Of a DNA stretch of 64,000 nt, positions 17,039 to 60,715 are shown one piece after another. The first letter of the stretch is position 1. Every line of letters starts with the position of its first letter. Origin of the DNA: Oikopleura dioica (lineage: Eukaryota; Animalia; Chordata). The notes beneath the pieces are model-generated. The model did not search any database and was not told the origin of the DNA. It saw only the letters and a list, made by a program, of their open reading frames with translations. The stretch is taken from positions 11,904,001 through 11,968,000 of the forward strand of contig OU015566.1 of assembly GCA_907165135.1 (NCBI GenBank). The letters run 5' to 3'. A program made the position numbers and the translations under genes.

Positions 17039-17640
17039 ATGCCGCTCCATCACTCGGAAGAGATGGATATCCGGGAAAGATCAAGACTACGGAGAGAAAG
17101 CGAGAGGGAGCAGCAACGCCAGAGAAGGAAAGAGTCTTTCGAACGAATAAGAATTTCTTCTTCTTGAAAATTGACAGTCGTAAAATGAAACTCCAGAATA
17201 GAGAAAGCGAGCGAGAAAGACAACAGCAGCGTGAAGAAGAACGACGAGAACGGCTTCGAGAACAGCAGCTTGAAAATTTACATCGAGAAAGATGTAATTT
17301 TGAATAACTGTTCATCTGTTCTGTTCAATTTCGATTCTTACGACGTAGGGCTTATGTTGTTTGATGAGATTTCCTTCACTTTTGACCATCTTTGATTTAT
17401 TTGTTTTATTTTAAGGATTTTCAGCACTTGTCGAAATGAATTCTGCAGAAAGAAGACAACAGCAGGAAAGTTTTTCAGAAACTTAGTTGGCAAGTGCTGA
17501 ATGAAATTTCATCTCGAAAAGGCTTAAAAGAAAGAACAAGAGCAAGAACGGCGACGACAACAGGAAGAAGACCGTCGAGAACGGGAACGAGAACGACGAG
17601 AACGAGAGCGCGAACGGCGAAATCAGCTTCAAAATCTGCA
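17039..17640 (+). repeat. Three degenerate copies of a Glu/Arg/Gln-rich coiled-coil-like sequence (probable decayed gene)
   Basis: GAACGACGAGAACG...CAGCTT(G/C)AAAAT recurs at ~17240 and ~17590-17640. The MPLHHSEEMDI start at 17039 resembles MPLYHDPEEMDI at 16385. Stops interrupt all frames. Confidence 0.45.
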
Positions 17641-54323: not shown

Positions 54324-55682
54324 CGAGCAATTAACGCGTTACGACTCAAAGGGCCTTTGCGATCAAAGTCATGTGGATCTGGAACGTGTCCAGTGTTATT
54401 TCAGCTTTTATGCATTTTTCAATATTTGCGGTGAAAATGTAATCCAGACTCTTGAGCAAAATCACGGCTGAGTTTCCTCAAATACGAAAAGAACAAGTTC
54501 CTTAACAAAATAATCAATAAAAAATATCAAGCAAATAAAAAGAACCTCGAAGGTAAATTTGCGCGAAAAAGGCGCTTGACAGTTGTTATGTTATTGCAGG
54601 TGGAGAGAGGTCCAGGGTTCCATTCGTGTACCAAACAAGGCATAATCCTGAAGGCACGGGCATCCGTGAAGAGTCCAATTTACTAAAGCGCAGATTAGGA
54701 GTACTAAAAGCCGTGAGAGTGGCAAAGGATATCGGCGATATCATATCGCGTAATGTTCAATTAGCAGTTCGTTTCTTGGTTTTCTCTTGAATTCTGAATG
54801 ATTTCTATCCTTCAAGAGCTTCAATGATCAAAAACCTCGGCTTGAATTCTTTCATCCTTTCTTCAACTTCCGCTTTCCCGCCAAAAACCGATTCAAGCTC
54901 CAATTTACGAAGGTGATTTAACGAGGTGCCACGCGCCTAGAAGCGCCTTCTATTCCCATCAAGAAAATTTACTCAGCGCGGAGAAGCCCTATGAAAATTC
55001 TGGCGGAGCGGGGAATACCTGGAAGTAATAAAATAGGCTCGAATGTGTTATAAATCTGTCGTATTAAAGTGTTGTCGAATTGGATCAGACATCTAAAGGG
55101 CTTTGATACCCGATCATGGGAACAAGCGAGTCACACATTTCTGGATATTCCAATTAGCGCTAGTTGAAAAATTAGAATTCTAATTTGAAATTTGGCATAC
55201 CGAAAAGACATCAAGTACTCAGATCCCAAAAAATCGTTGAACAAAGCTAAATTTCCCCTACCCGCCGGGATTTTTTATGAACGCCATAAGAATGATCTTG
55301 ATGAGCTTTATCGAAAATTCCTTCTCGTTTTTGTCGAAAAAAAGAAAAAAAATCATGTAGGCTGAATTCAATCTCGCTATGAAACTTCGAGATATGATTA
55401 GCCGTCGATTTAGCTAACTTTTTGACACAAATCTATGAATTTTGAAAACAAGAAGGAACAGAATTAGATAAATTGGAACGGGAGAACTCATCTGCCACAC
55501 TGGACTCCAGGGTCTTTTTTCAAAGTCTATCCTGCTAAATTCAGATTTTTGCCGACGTTTATCCTGTTAGCTAGAGGTTACCCTATGTAAATGGGGAATC
55601 TGACAGAGTTACTTAAAAGTTGTCATCAACAAGATTTTATTTATTTTCGAAATATAAAATTTAATAACTCGATAAAAGAAAA

Positions 55683-58600
55683 ATGGTCGATATGATAACA
55701 TCGATGTGAGGGGATTCAAAAGAATTCTCTTCAGGAGAGGCAAAGCGGTAACAAAAGCCTTGGATAAGGCGAGAGGAGAAACTGTTATCGTCAAGGGAAT
55801 TCTTCTGGAAAATCCAAGTCATCGGCAAGATGCACAAGATGAAGCCGCCACTCTTCGAGAATTAGGTTAGTTGCTCTTTTATGAAAGGGTAAATTTATCT
55901 GACGTTAATTAAACATGACTAGATCATGCGAATATTGTTCGATTTGTCGACTTCCTCGATTATCAAACGCCAAGATGGGCCGGTGGATCGATGAGTTTTA
56001 TCATCATGGAATACTGTCGTGGAGGAGACCTGGCTGGCTGGATTGCCAAGATGAAGGCATCTGGAAGACAAACAACGAAGGAAGAAGCAGCACTTATTGG
56101 TGCACAGATGATATCTGCACTGAGCTACTGCCATGAGAGGAACAAGGTTCACCTCGATTTGAAACCGGCAAACATTTTCATTCTTGACGACTTTATAACA
56201 GTAAGATCCACTATCAATGATTTCTAGCTGAGCTCAACTTCAAGATAAAAATCGGCGATTTTGGAAGCGCCCAGTCAGTCCGATCCGTGATGGACTCGAT
56301 CAACGCAAGCAGAGGTTATCCGATGGTATGCACGAAACTTTATGCTTCCCCAGGTAACATTCATTACGAAAAGAATTAGTTAAATTTGATCTCTGAAGAA
56401 TGGTATGAAGAAAATGCAAAAAAGTCTCCAAGAATCGATGTTTGGGGATTCGGCTTGATTTTACAGGTAAATTGAAATAAATTCCCTGTTCAAAGATTAT
56501 TTCCAAAAGGAAATTCTGACATTAGAGCATGCTTTTGGTCGAGTTGATGGTCGAACTTGCGGATCACGTAAAATTGGTAAGATGATCCGTATTCTGAAAT
56601 AAATAATTAACGTGCAAAATAATCTGTAGAGAAAAATTTGCTAATGGGAAAACGGACATCTCTCTTCGAAATCTTTGGCGAAAATGACGAATTCGAAGAA
56701 TTCGAAGCCCTTCTTGAAAAGTGCACTCGACTTGATCGCAAAAGACGACCGAGAAATGCGATTGAGCTTCGAAATGAAAATCTCTTCCTTGATTTCTTGC
56801 AGCGAATCGAAAATGGCGAGCGACCTTGCGACATTGTTCCTCCTCCCTTCATTAACGAAAGAAACCAAATAAAGCGACTTCAAGAAGTTATTAAAAGCAA
56901 AGACCAACTCATCGAAAAGCTGGAGAAGAAAATTCAAAGATTAGAATTTCTAGCTAATGTTGTTTTTGCTCTTTTTCGCCGTATTTTAACTCATTTTTAG
57001 ACGAAGAAGAAGGCTGACACGCTTTACTCTGATCTCGAGGAATGCAAAGGTGATCATAAATTGATCTTCAAACTCGGCAAAGACAACGTCCATCTTTTCG
57101 AGACCGTTGATCAACAAATTATCATCATGGATGTTCTTTTGGAGAAGGTTATTGAAAAGTCTGTTGCTGATCGGGAGGCCTTATCGAAACTTCTGATGGT
57201 TATTGCCGATGAAGCTAATTTTATGGACTGGGAAGCTTGGTAAAACAGAATCATTAAGACATTGCCTAACTTGTATTTAGTATTGTTCCATTCGTCAAGA
57301 AAGCAGTTGAACAAGATCGGATCACTCGTTGCCCCAAGTTCTGGAAATATCTTTCGTAAGACTACACTTATCTATCGTGAATAAATATAATTCTAGACAA
57401 TGTATCTGCAAGATCTACAAATCCTCTGCAGTTGACCCTAAATCCATCAAGGGAATCACTGAACCAGCAAAAGATCTCTGTTCTTGGACAAACGCCATCT
57501 GTGCTATGATCGAAGAGATCGACTACATTTTCTGGGATAAGAAGAGGATGCACGATTTGTACTCCATCGCAGAAATTGATCTTGCCGCGATCATCGCCGA
57601 AGATGGACTCTCACAGACTCCCGAAGAGTGGTACGTTATCTCCCTATGTCTTAACTCGCCACTTATCAAATCAATCAAGCTTTGCCGAACTGGAATTAGA
57701 TTTTTTGCTCAAGCCTCTAGTTTTATGGGGCAAGGTCGAAAGCCAGCTTATTGACAGCTTGAGAAATCACGCTTTTGGCGAATCAGAGATGGAAGACTTC
57801 TCGAAGGAGTTTGATATGTTGGAGGAGATGGTTCCCGAAGGACCTGATGGACGTGGCCACCGAAACTTTATCAAGGTTCTTGTCAATGCAGTCATGACCT
57901 TTTCCGTCGACTCTGGTAAAAAATCTTCCATGCTCTCTGTTTTATAAAGAGTTTAAATTTAGATTCTAATCAATTGATCCTTCGAAGCCGGGTAGACTCC
58001 AAATTCTCTGACTGTGGGTTGCTGTTGCGAAAGTACATCAATAACGAGGACAATGGACTAGAAGTGTTGTTCGTAATGTCGGACATCTTCAGAAAGAAAC
58101 ACGAGAATAATCCCAGTAAGTTTTTGCTAAACTGCCAAAAATGCACGGAAAATAATAACAAAGCCTTATAGTACTGATAGAGAATGTTTTCTCTGAATTG
58201 TACGACCTTTCTATTTTGGAAATTCCGACCTTCCAGGCGTGGATCAAATTGAGAAGCGCAGAGAAACTTAAAAACTTCGCGGTTATTTCTGATGCCACCA
58301 AGTAAGCCTATTGATGTTATACTATGGTATATATGATATACATTTTTTAGGGATTTTTTCTTATCCTTGGATCAAATAAAAATAATGGAAGAAAAGAAAG
58401 AGTTGGAGAAGCTGAGGAAGGAGCTGGGTGCTGTAGGTGGAACTGGCGAGTTTTATCAAGATGATCGACATGTTGAGCAAGGTGGATGGAGAGAAGAAGT
58501 AAAAGAAGAAGGATTGCGGAAAGTGCTGAAGCTGTTGGCAGTTGGAGAGCGAAAAATCAATCTTAAGGAACGAGATATCTTAGGTTTTTTTTGAAATACT

Positions 58601-58949
58601 CTGTTTCAAATAGGATATCCTCTCCTAAAAGTTTCTGTCGAAGCAAAATTTCGAGGTCGCAGAAGCAGGATGGTACTTGCAATTCAAGAGTGCTTTGTGT
58701 GGAGGAAATGGCTGGTTCTACTTATCGATTTGGAATAAAGGTAAAAGAAGTCTTGATTTATAATTTTTCCCTTAATTTTTAGAAGGCGGCAGAAGATTCA
58801 AAGCCGTCGCGCAAGAAATTGGTTATTTTACTGGAGAAGAAAAAAATCTGAAAGAAATAACAAGCGAGGCGGAGGGACTGCAACAAGTGATAAAATATGA
58901 AAGAAAAACTCATTCTTTTTATGTAAGATTTAATATTTGTTTCCTGTAA
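55683..58949 (+). CDS. Mosaic protein: NEK-like Ser/Thr kinase, coiled coil, eIF4G-type MA3 and W2 domains, coiled coil, lineage-specific C-terminal domain
   Basis: Kinase motifs VIVK, IIMEYCRGGDL, HLDLKPANIF, GDFG, YASPE, DVWGFG. MA3-like LEKVIEKSVADREALSKLL...CPKFWKYLSQ and W2-like NFIKVLVNAVM...LLLRKYIN...FSELYDLSILEIPTFQAW...TKDFFLSL. Exons join in frame through short introns. The 5' start is uncertain and one junction near 58574-58631 needs a non-GT donor. Confidence 0.7.
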
Positions 58950-59446: not shown

Positions 59447-59750
59447 TTATAGAGCGGCTTGAATTGCATCGAAGATTGCGTTCAATTTCTTGTCGCTATC
59501 GATGTACCCGTCGCCTGAATAGATTCCCGTTAGAGACAGAATAAATAAAGATTGTACCTTTAGTAAGCTTGGAGTGAACCAATTGGCCATTGACGTTGAC
59601 CTCAAGAGCACCGGAGGTCTCCTTAGTCGGCTCAGAAGTGATCTCGACCTGGGAGGCTTCGAATTCGTCCAAAATCTGAGCCTTGAGATGCTCAAATTTC
59701 GGACGGTAGCCTCACCCGCCGCAGTAAATAACGTGGATTTTCACAGCCAT
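59447..59750 (-). CDS. SELENOW: Selenoprotein W (86 aa, UGA at codon 13 read as Sec)
   Basis: join(complement 59558..59750, 59447..59514): MAVKIHVIYCGGUGYRPKFEHLKAQILDEFEASQVEITSEPTKETSGALEVNVNGQLVHSKLTKGDGYIDSDKKLNAIFDAIQAAL. CxxU motif with TGA at 59712-59714 and a downstream SECIS. Confidence 0.95.
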
Positions 59751-60715
59751 TGTCTAAAACAAATCGTATCGAGCATTTTCATCTTCAGTAAATAATAGTT
59801 TTACAATCGAATATTTACATGAAAAACAGAAAAAAGGGAAATTGGAGTTTGGAAGTGCCCACTTATTTGAGTCTTCGTTGACTTCAATACGATAGGGTTA
59901 CAGTAGATGGTGACTGTATTCAGATACTTCAAACGTGGTGATAATTCGTTGACTGTATATCAAGCTTTGTCAGTTGTGCAGTTAATTACTATTAATAAGT
60001 TTAACTGTCAAAAACTATCGAAAATTTTACTCAAATAACAAATATCTGCAATTGCGGGAAAATTTTTTCATCGAAATTTAATTTAATGTTAGTTTTTTAA
60101 TTTTGCTAAATCAATTGTCCAGAAATCAAAATTATTAACGGAAAAAGAAATTTGCTTAATCAACAAAAAACTGACTCATCACTTGGTTTAACGAAGCGGC
60201 GGCGACATCAAACAAACAACGCGCCCCTATTTTTGGTAACGGCCTTGGTACTCCTCTTTTTGTCTCTCCTAAAAAAGTGAAAAAGTCGAAAAGAGTGTCT
60301 TTCTGATTCTCCGCTGTTGCTGATTGGTCAAATTTCGCGCCGTCGGGGGCGATCGGGCGCGCGCACGGGCCAAGAAAGGGAAAGAATCCGAAAAACGAGC
60401 TTTTCGCTTTTCAAAGAAAGAAAACTGAAAGAAAGACTTCGAGAAAATTATGAAGGGATGAGAAGGCATTGAGAAAGATAAAAGAATAGAAAGGAAGAAA
60501 AATGGGAAAACAAGTGATGAAAGTTGAGTTATTAGGTTCGGGTTAAAATTATCGTTTGTTTTTGGTTAAAAAAGTGTATTTTTGATAAATAAAATTGAAT
60601 TGAAAATAAAATTTCTGGAGAAAATAAGCATTTTGATCAATAAACTTGTGTTCCTTTGACTGTAAATGCCTTCTTTTCTACGAAACATCGTACATAACCG
60701 GCTAATTTATCATTA

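Follow-up and report, generated by a model that had tools for sequence, protein, structure and literature searches.

Within a 64,000-nucleotide (nt) stretch of the Oikopleura dioica genome (contig OU015566.1, forward-strand positions 11,904,001 to 11,968,000; this whole stretch is hereafter called the window), the segment at 55679–58949 (+) carries a gene whose predicted product joins a protein kinase to a copy of the C-terminal MA3 and W2 domains of the translation initiation factor eIF4G. The gene model was drawn from the three forward frames and the sequence itself and was then refined against relatives. Spliced in this way, the segment yields a single 867-codon frame that is free of stops until a TAA at 58947–58949, and kinase and MA3–W2 exons are thereby read in one frame, as had been proposed in a first-pass annotation made from the letters alone. 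The model comprises 15 exons and 14 introns of 41–58 nt, 13 of which are GT-AG and one GA-AG. Since the median intron of O. dioica measures 49 nt and 11–12% of its introns depart from the GT-AG rule (PMC8008620), the modelled introns fit this species.

Gene structure and kinase family

Exon 1 (55679–55865; this and all following exons on the + strand), delimited by its reading frame and splice sites, encodes the kinase N-lobe and starts right after an AG at 55677–55678, ahead of which lies a TAAC branch-like motif. The kinase core, with its HLDLKPAN, DFG, SPE and DVWGFG motifs, is encoded by exons 2–5 (55923–56200, 56245–56353, 56399–56466 and 56510–56576), and exon 6 (56630–56958) provides the end of the C-lobe followed by a coiled coil, its last nucleotides from ~56949 onwards being derived from an eIF4G intron. 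Intron 6 (56959–57000, +; 42 nt, donor GTTGTT) constitutes the left junction of the eIF4G-derived block, as placed by alignment with L001 (the canonical eIF4G gene of the Okinawa type, which served as the reference for comparisons with the copy), L002 (another canonical eIF4G gene) and L003. The MA3 copy occupies exons 7–9 (57001–57239, 57281–57355 and 57397–57630), while the inter-domain linker and the W2 copy occupy exons 10–12 (57680–57915, 57963–58115 and 58172–58301). Exon 13 (58351–58573) contributes the last W2 residues (KDFFLSLDQ, to ~58385) and then returns to a coiled coil and tail typical of the kinase family (ELEKLRKELGAVGG...KINLKER). The intron that follows (58574–58631, +) was placed by enumeration as a GA-AG intron of 58 nt, with a GG-AG intron of 49 nt as the alternative, and leads into exons 14–15 (58632–58740 and 58783–58949), which encode the conserved C-terminal domain of the kinase family. 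For intron 9, alternatives with a GTTATC donor or an acceptor at 57742 were dropped, as the adopted 57631–57679 matches the junctions of L001, L002 and L004.

The presence of kinase exons, the first element of the earlier annotation, was borne out by a Pfam Pkinase (PF00069) match to exon 2 with an E-value of 1.1e-15 (58.1 bits vs. a cutoff of 31.7). Used as a 93-amino-acid (aa) query against the PDB, the same exon retrieved 456 kinase sequences at E ≤ 0.001; among solved kinases, NEK2 comes nearest (E = 7.9e-10), with CDPK, ULK3, Wee1, PKR and AMPK within about two orders of magnitude. A search with exon 6 revealed 16 homologous open reading frame (ORF) fragments from marine metagenomes (P0006–P0021), 45–59% identical in alignment, and in tblastx comparison with the relatives L008 and L009, the segments of exons 14–15 are each 36–62% identical and share one frame. 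A word search for homologs of exon 1 found none. On sequence grounds, the host gene is a member of a multi-copy, fast-evolving, tentatively NEK-like family composed of a kinase, a coiled coil and a conserved tail. This family (P0006–P0021 and L007–L010, in marine metagenomes and Logan assemblies) is large, and its tail (EVAEAGW...YVRFNI) has no Pfam hit.

Origin, junctions and divergence of the eIF4G-derived block

Residues 348–717 of the window protein, encoded by exons 7–13a, align with residues 1183–1559 of P0023 (Oidioi.mRNA.OKI2018_I69.chr1.g2544), the annotated O. dioica eIF4G of 1566 aa, with 78% identity over 377 columns and no large gaps; for the MA3 exons 7–9, compared with P0023 1183–1364, the identity is 78% as well. 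P0023 was retrieved with the C-terminal region of L016, one of three intron-free contigs (L011, L013 and L016) identified by a pattern scan of metagenome contigs. These contain ORFs of 1179–1513 aa with MIF4G matches at E~1e-22 and are taken to be cDNA (metatranscriptome) contigs. In a HMMER search of 1.84 billion representatives, exon 9 matched five short ORF fragments only, which led to the contigs of relatives bearing the same exons at 65–80% identity; upstream of these exons lie MIF4G exons (E = 4.2e-5 for a 100-aa piece) and a long linker, and no kinase. At its splice sites, the block agrees with the canonical genes L001 and L002, and in the canonical gene these sites are confirmed by cDNA, as spliced L002 and L013 agree over 1085 nt with a single mismatch and every junction 30-mer is found.

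For Pfam, AlphaFold and Foldseek analyses, the spliced window protein was represented by its 78%-identical parent P0023, and a profile of the C-terminal region of six appendicularian eIF4Gs (profile A5) was searched against the PDB. The best match of this profile was the C-terminus of human eIF4G1 (1UG3, E = 8.3e-6), in two collinear stretches over MA3 and W2: profile positions 3–176 match 1UG3 residues 5–173 (MA3), and positions 295–377 match the eIF4G1 W2 region. Full-length eIF4G1 ranked second and the W2 domain of eIF2B-epsilon fourth. Pairings that the first-pass annotation had drawn by eye with human eIF4G1 reappear in the alignment of profile A5 with 1UG3 (LSEEELEKKSKAIIEE / LTPEEIEKKAGTLYSD; LERSAIAREHMGQLL / LEKSV..REA.AKLL; DIPHVWLYLAE / DCPKFWQYLSQ; LLQKYL / LLRKYI; FFDALYDEDVVKEDAFYSW / VFSELYELSI.EIPTFQRW). 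AlphaFold2 modelled P0023:1175–1566 with a mean predicted local distance difference test score (pLDDT) of 82.8. When this model was submitted to Foldseek, the only PDB matches with E < 0.001 were 1UG3 (8.9e-8) and DAP5/p97 (3L6A; 6.6e-5), both covering the two domains. The exons after the kinase were thus correctly recognized as the MA3 and W2 part of eIF4G, given their identity to the O. dioica eIF4G C-terminus and the profile and fold matches to eIF4G1 and DAP5.

Pfam itself supported the proposed domain series in part. Pkinase scored on exon 2, as described above; W2 was marginal and appeared on homologs only (E = 1.1e-6 on the more distant P0024, with 29 bits at a cutoff of 30, and 0.045 on P0023); and MA3 found no match in the window exons, in P0023 or in the eIF4Gs of the cDNA contigs. 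As Pfam MA3 never fires, the appendicularian MA3 and W2 domains are strongly diverged. The W2 copy in the window keeps VFSELYDLSILEIPTFQAW. Taken singly, the MA3 and W2 exons of the window, L002 and L004 had no Pfam match, being too short and too diverged; phmmer and four-sequence exon profiles run with single exons against the PDB gave chance matches only, and an ESM Atlas search with exon 7 returned an uninformative 0.69 vs. viral hypotheticals. Automatic annotation of appendicularian eIF4Gs (P0023, L011, L013 and L016) shows MIF4G only, with MA3 and W2 being recovered by profile and fold searches.

The absence of MIF4G and of the N-terminal parts of eIF4G, asserted in the earlier annotation, was evident as well. 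MIF4G lies at residues 688–982 of P0023 (E = 2.4e-23), the copy starts only at parent residue 1183, and Pfam detects no MIF4G in the window exons. Because this domain is absent, the predicted window protein would be the holder of an eIF4G fragment and not an eIF4G.

Comparison with relatives on either side of the chimera delimits the block. In the canonical genes L001 and L002, it is preceded by MIF4G and linker exons, and no kinase. Conversely, the kinase-family fragment P0012 is a single ORF that passes from the coiled coil into sequence matching window 58391–58591, located after the block (46% identity, E = 9e-19). In L007, L008 and L009, this same tail, together with two conserved exons (equivalent to window 58632–58740 and 58783–58949), lies within 0–460 nt downstream of the kinase part, with no MA3–W2 between kinase/coiled coil and tail; L010, the closest relative of the kinase, likewise lacks the insertion. 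Homology between the window and eIF4G begins at ~56949, within an intron of L001, and ends in exon 13 near 58371–58386, whereupon the kinase-family tail resumes (58391–58949). Since the relatives run directly from coiled coil to tail and the homology starts in mid-intron, it was the eIF4G piece that was inserted in a kinase exon. By this comparison, the block interrupts the exon that encodes the coiled coil and was not fused to the C-terminal end of the kinase; the earlier view of MA3–W2 as the end of the protein has to be given up.

The copy begins midway in the intron ahead of MA3, ends seven codons short of the eIF4G stop and is in frame at both junctions; what was copied and inserted into the coiled-coil exon is thus a genomic eIF4G fragment. 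Intron 6 represents the 3′ part of this same eIF4G intron and has a TTAAC branch-like motif, the conserved acceptor and a new donor: the GT at 56959, located in the former intron, is a phase-0 donor and fits the old phase-0 eIF4G acceptor at 57000, to which it would now be spliced. On the right side, the last eIF4G exon is fused directly and in frame to kinase coding sequence, into which translation would continue without a further splice. The junction on which the architecture turns is consequently 56958/57001, rather than 57240–57280 as the first-pass annotation had it. The stop at 57241–57243, which it had named as a point where kinase and MA3–W2 might part, sits in a donor common to canonical eIF4G and is removed in cDNA.

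A maximum-likelihood tree groups the copy with L001 and P0023 at a support of 97/97. The branch of the copy measures 0.24, compared to 0.009–0.01 for the canonical genes; it evolves ~25 times faster than its canonical parent. This grouping dates the duplication to within the Okinawa-type lineage, after its split from other sampled O. dioica lineages. As judged from the tree, the block is a young, fast-evolving paralog of canonical eIF4G carried by an O. dioica genome (OKI2018_I69), an origin that the first-pass annotation had missed.

Divergence of the copy from L001 is unevenly distributed. Exons are 84.9% identical and introns 72.7%, with many indels in the introns; indels of the block are of 6 and 12 nt only. 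Differences fall on the three codon positions in the ratio 34/16/68 (p = 2e-8), and under neutral drift with 118 substitutions the chance that the first 261 codons stay free of stops is 0.025. The ratio of non-synonymous to synonymous substitution rates (dN/dS, NG86) is 0.18 for the window and L001 vs. 0.058 for L001 and L002, and three-point dN amounts to 0.085 on the window branch and 0.0125 on that of L001. Under a conservative branch split that ascribes all non-synonymous and half of the synonymous changes to the copy, the corresponding ratio of proportions (pN/pS) is 0.48 (p = 7e-4). These codon comparisons show the copy to be under purifying selection.

Coding status and expression of the chimera

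The locus is best read as encoding a single expressed chimeric protein of about 867 aa, composed of kinase, coiled coil, MA3, W2, coiled coil and tail and specific to a lineage of O. dioica; we assign this reading a probability of roughly 0.6. It is the simplest one because the block has neither a start nor a stop of its own, is open and in frame with conserved flanking exons, and is under purifying selection. From the reading frame, selection and the family comparison, we infer that a single mRNA follows the modelled splicing and is translated. A limited literature search retrieved no paper on a kinase–MA3–W2 protein, in agreement with the earlier annotation, which had considered the architecture undescribed.

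Several observations weigh against a single functional protein, namely the lack of an in-frame ATG in exon 1, the need for a GA-AG or GG-AG intron between exons 13 and 14, an atypical donor at the left junction, changes at conserved residues of both parts and the RNA data. With regard to the start of translation, an ATG in good context at 55683 (+) lies in another frame and is followed by a TGA after eight codons (55683–55709). Translation could truly begin at this ATG, given a short intron behind it, or the ATG could belong to an upstream ORF. Enumeration of mini-introns behind it gave GT-AG introns of 29–32 nt or a GA-AG intron of 41 nt, ending at 55734/55737; such an intron is possible in the window and was not adopted, and it has no counterpart in L008. 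In L008, which comes from another organism, the conserved AATAACTCGnnAAAAG|AAAAATGGnCGAT arrangement recurs, with the ATG likewise out of frame. Because L008 shares it, the missing in-frame ATG is a trait of the family and not a private frameshift. No conserved upstream 5′ exon was found by tblastx of the upstream region vs. L008. A conserved 29-nt block (AATAACTCGnnAAAAGAAAAATGGnCGAT) is present at the 5′ end of these two diverged kinase paralogs (window 55664–55692 and L008:975–1003), and the ATG is out of the kinase frame in both.

The linker between exons 13 and 14 was compared among four kinase-family members (L007:1260–1345, L009:1430–1515, L008:2760–2845 and window 58574–58631). Enumeration found no GT-AG intron that joins the two exons. 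Between the conserved flanks '...KINLKER' and 'F...EVAEAGW', three of the four members contain stops or a frameshift; this applies to L007 and L009, and in L008 the equivalent 51 nt begin with GA and end with AG. The linker fits a conserved non-canonical GA/GG-AG intron of 48–58 nt in the kinase family. At the left junction, the GTTGTT donor of intron 6 departs from the usual pattern (11 of the 12 other GT donors have an A at +3), and if this intron stays unspliced, the kinase frame stops at a TAG at 56998–57000.

Conserved residues are affected in the copy as well as in the host. Of 56 positions at which canonical eIF4Gs do not vary, the copy differs at eight, including a D to R replacement in TDCPKFW, the D-x-P motif of MA3 that aligns with human IDIPHVW; given these changes, binding of the canonical partners may be altered or lost. 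The catalytic residues of the kinase are all present in the spliced model (β3 Lys in VIVK, αC Glu in DEAATLRE, HLDLKPAN, DFG and SPE). Its glycine-rich loop is degenerate (FRRGKA) and HLD stands in place of HRD, owing to which catalytic activity is plausible but not assured.

As for transcripts, three bulk oligo-dT runs and one single-cell run contained essentially no reads on the gene and no reads across its joints, a weak test as these runs probably stem from another population, and none of the indexed RNA runs holds the gene. Reads on a neighboring gene (window 59449–59822, −) are all only 95–99% like the window, with fixed differences, from which a strongly diverged O. dioica population is the probable source of the four runs. 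This neighboring gene is expressed in all four and is trans-spliced to the spliced leader (SL) at 59755, where the reverse complement of the loose read end, CATTTTTGAGTCCGATTTCGATTGTCTAAC, is part of the 40-nt O. dioica SL (PMC6883708). Two further loose ends of the gene, at 59457 and 59516, look like exon borders.

Among the alternatives, the best placed, albeit unlikely, is that of a dying or untranslated product of the rearrangement, which was selected in former times, or whose divergence mostly reflects the constrained parent branch, and which gives rise to no protein now. The missing RNA reads and in-frame ATG, the non-canonical intron, the protein branch ~25 times that of the parent and the lost invariant residues would all be expected of such a locus. 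It is difficult to reconcile, however, with 867 codons devoid of stops and frameshifts, with usable ends on all 14 introns, and with a third-position bias and a pN/pS below 1 that persist even when all non-synonymous changes are given to the copy. Moreover, the missing ATG and the odd intron are common to relatives in other organisms and hence speak for traits of the family, not for decay.

Somewhat less probable still is a division of the locus into two cistrons, with a tail-less kinase ending at the TAG at 56998–57000 and a second, SL-trans-spliced mRNA beginning at the acceptor at 57000. Translation of the latter would start at the Met of IIIMDVLLEK, which is encoded in exon 7 by the first AUG in frame, and would yield an N-clipped MA3–W2 with only the kinase-family tail. 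O. dioica has operons and SL trans-splicing (PMC6883708), and the neighboring gene carries the SL; the acceptor and the stop overlap, GTTGTT is a weak donor, and the window has Met where all canonical eIF4Gs have Leu. On the other hand, no polyadenylation signal is evident before 57000, the four RNA runs contain no SL-carrying read at this gene, and the kinase would lose the tail conserved in its family. The 43 exon 7 codons upstream of the Met are, in addition, open and conserved, exon 7 being 80% identical to L001.

An assembly artefact joining a kinase gene to eIF4G sequence, conceivable if the window stems from the public OKI2018_I69 assembly, which was built from Nanopore reads (PMC8008620), is highly improbable. 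With no more than 78% identity to the real eIF4G, the copy is a separate locus, and in DNA runs from three samples of one study, the contigs contain 82–99% of the sampled 31-mers of 56630–58594, across both junctions. Run X29, a DNA run of 2025 attributed to another organism (organism B), contained 21% of the sampled words of the same segment, which could indicate a related lineage or prey or contaminant DNA. Elsewhere in the window, 17552–17617 gave the same weak tblastx match (22–25 bits) with a linker exon of L001 (587–652) and of L002 (470–535), probably a low-complexity chance match.

For the single chimeric protein, a function can be sketched by analogy. In mammals, MNK1/2, the kinases of eIF4E, dock on the W2 domain of eIF4G, and MA3 recruits eIF4A. 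By extension, the MA3–W2 module might recruit the kinase to the proteins that bind the end of eIF4G, namely eIF4A through MA3 and ligands of W2 (of the MNK type or others), or might compete with eIF4G for them; both roles, tether and competitor, are speculation from mammalian eIF4G. That the protein is a working enzyme which uses MA3–W2 as a built-in docking arm, phosphorylating eIF4A or another initiation partner or else titrating them, we regard as a rather doubtful proposition. If true, it would represent a covalent natural analog of eIF4G–MNK, and a new kinase input to translation initiation would have arisen in one O. dioica lineage via a single in-frame DNA insertion. In any case, part of the gene for an essential translation factor was duplicated at the DNA level, and the duplicate lies in frame in a kinase gene and is kept open by selection. 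Provided that the gene is expressed, it constitutes an unusually clean natural experiment on the origin of new signalling proteins; with a kinase permanently attached to the eIF4G portion that recruits eIF4A and MNK in mammals, it would also offer a direct handle on what MA3–W2 recruits, which is poorly understood.

Relation to known systems

Among known proteins, the block is closest to the MA3 domain, linker and W2 domain of O. dioica eIF4G itself (P0023; L001, L002, L011, L013 and L016), with which it shares an identical exon-intron structure. In contrast to this parent, the window gene has no N-terminal region, MIF4G or linker before residue 1183, lacks the last seven residues and the stop, and places the remainder in a kinase gene. 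The C-termini of human eIF4G1 (1UG3) and DAP5/p97 (3L6A) adopt the same two-domain MA3+W2 HEAT-repeat fold that is predicted for the parent region, yet share only 15–17% identity with the appendicularian region, and the conserved Asp of their D-x-P motif is Arg in the copy.

The mammalian MNK–eIF4G pair likewise connects a Ser/Thr kinase to the C-terminus of eIF4G. There, the link is non-covalent, the kinase belongs to the CAMK group and is activated by mitogen-activated protein kinases, and the scaffold holds eIF4E. In the window chimera, by comparison, a tentatively NEK-like kinase would be linked covalently, and the eIF4E and MIF4G parts are missing. NEK2-type kinases resemble the host in having a kinase domain followed by a C-terminal coiled coil, and NEK2 is the best, albeit weak, solved match to exon 2; the window family differs from them in its HLD/HQD in place of HRD, its degenerate glycine-rich loop and its own tail domain.

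Drosophila jingwei and primate TRIM5-CypA are young chimeric genes that arose via retroposed, intronless cDNA. As in the present case, a gene fragment was captured in frame and created a lineage-specific domain architecture. The window gene differs from both in that the insert came to lie within a coding exon and a new intron was made from a remnant of a donor-gene intron; because the introns of the donor are retained, the copy must have been made at the level of DNA.

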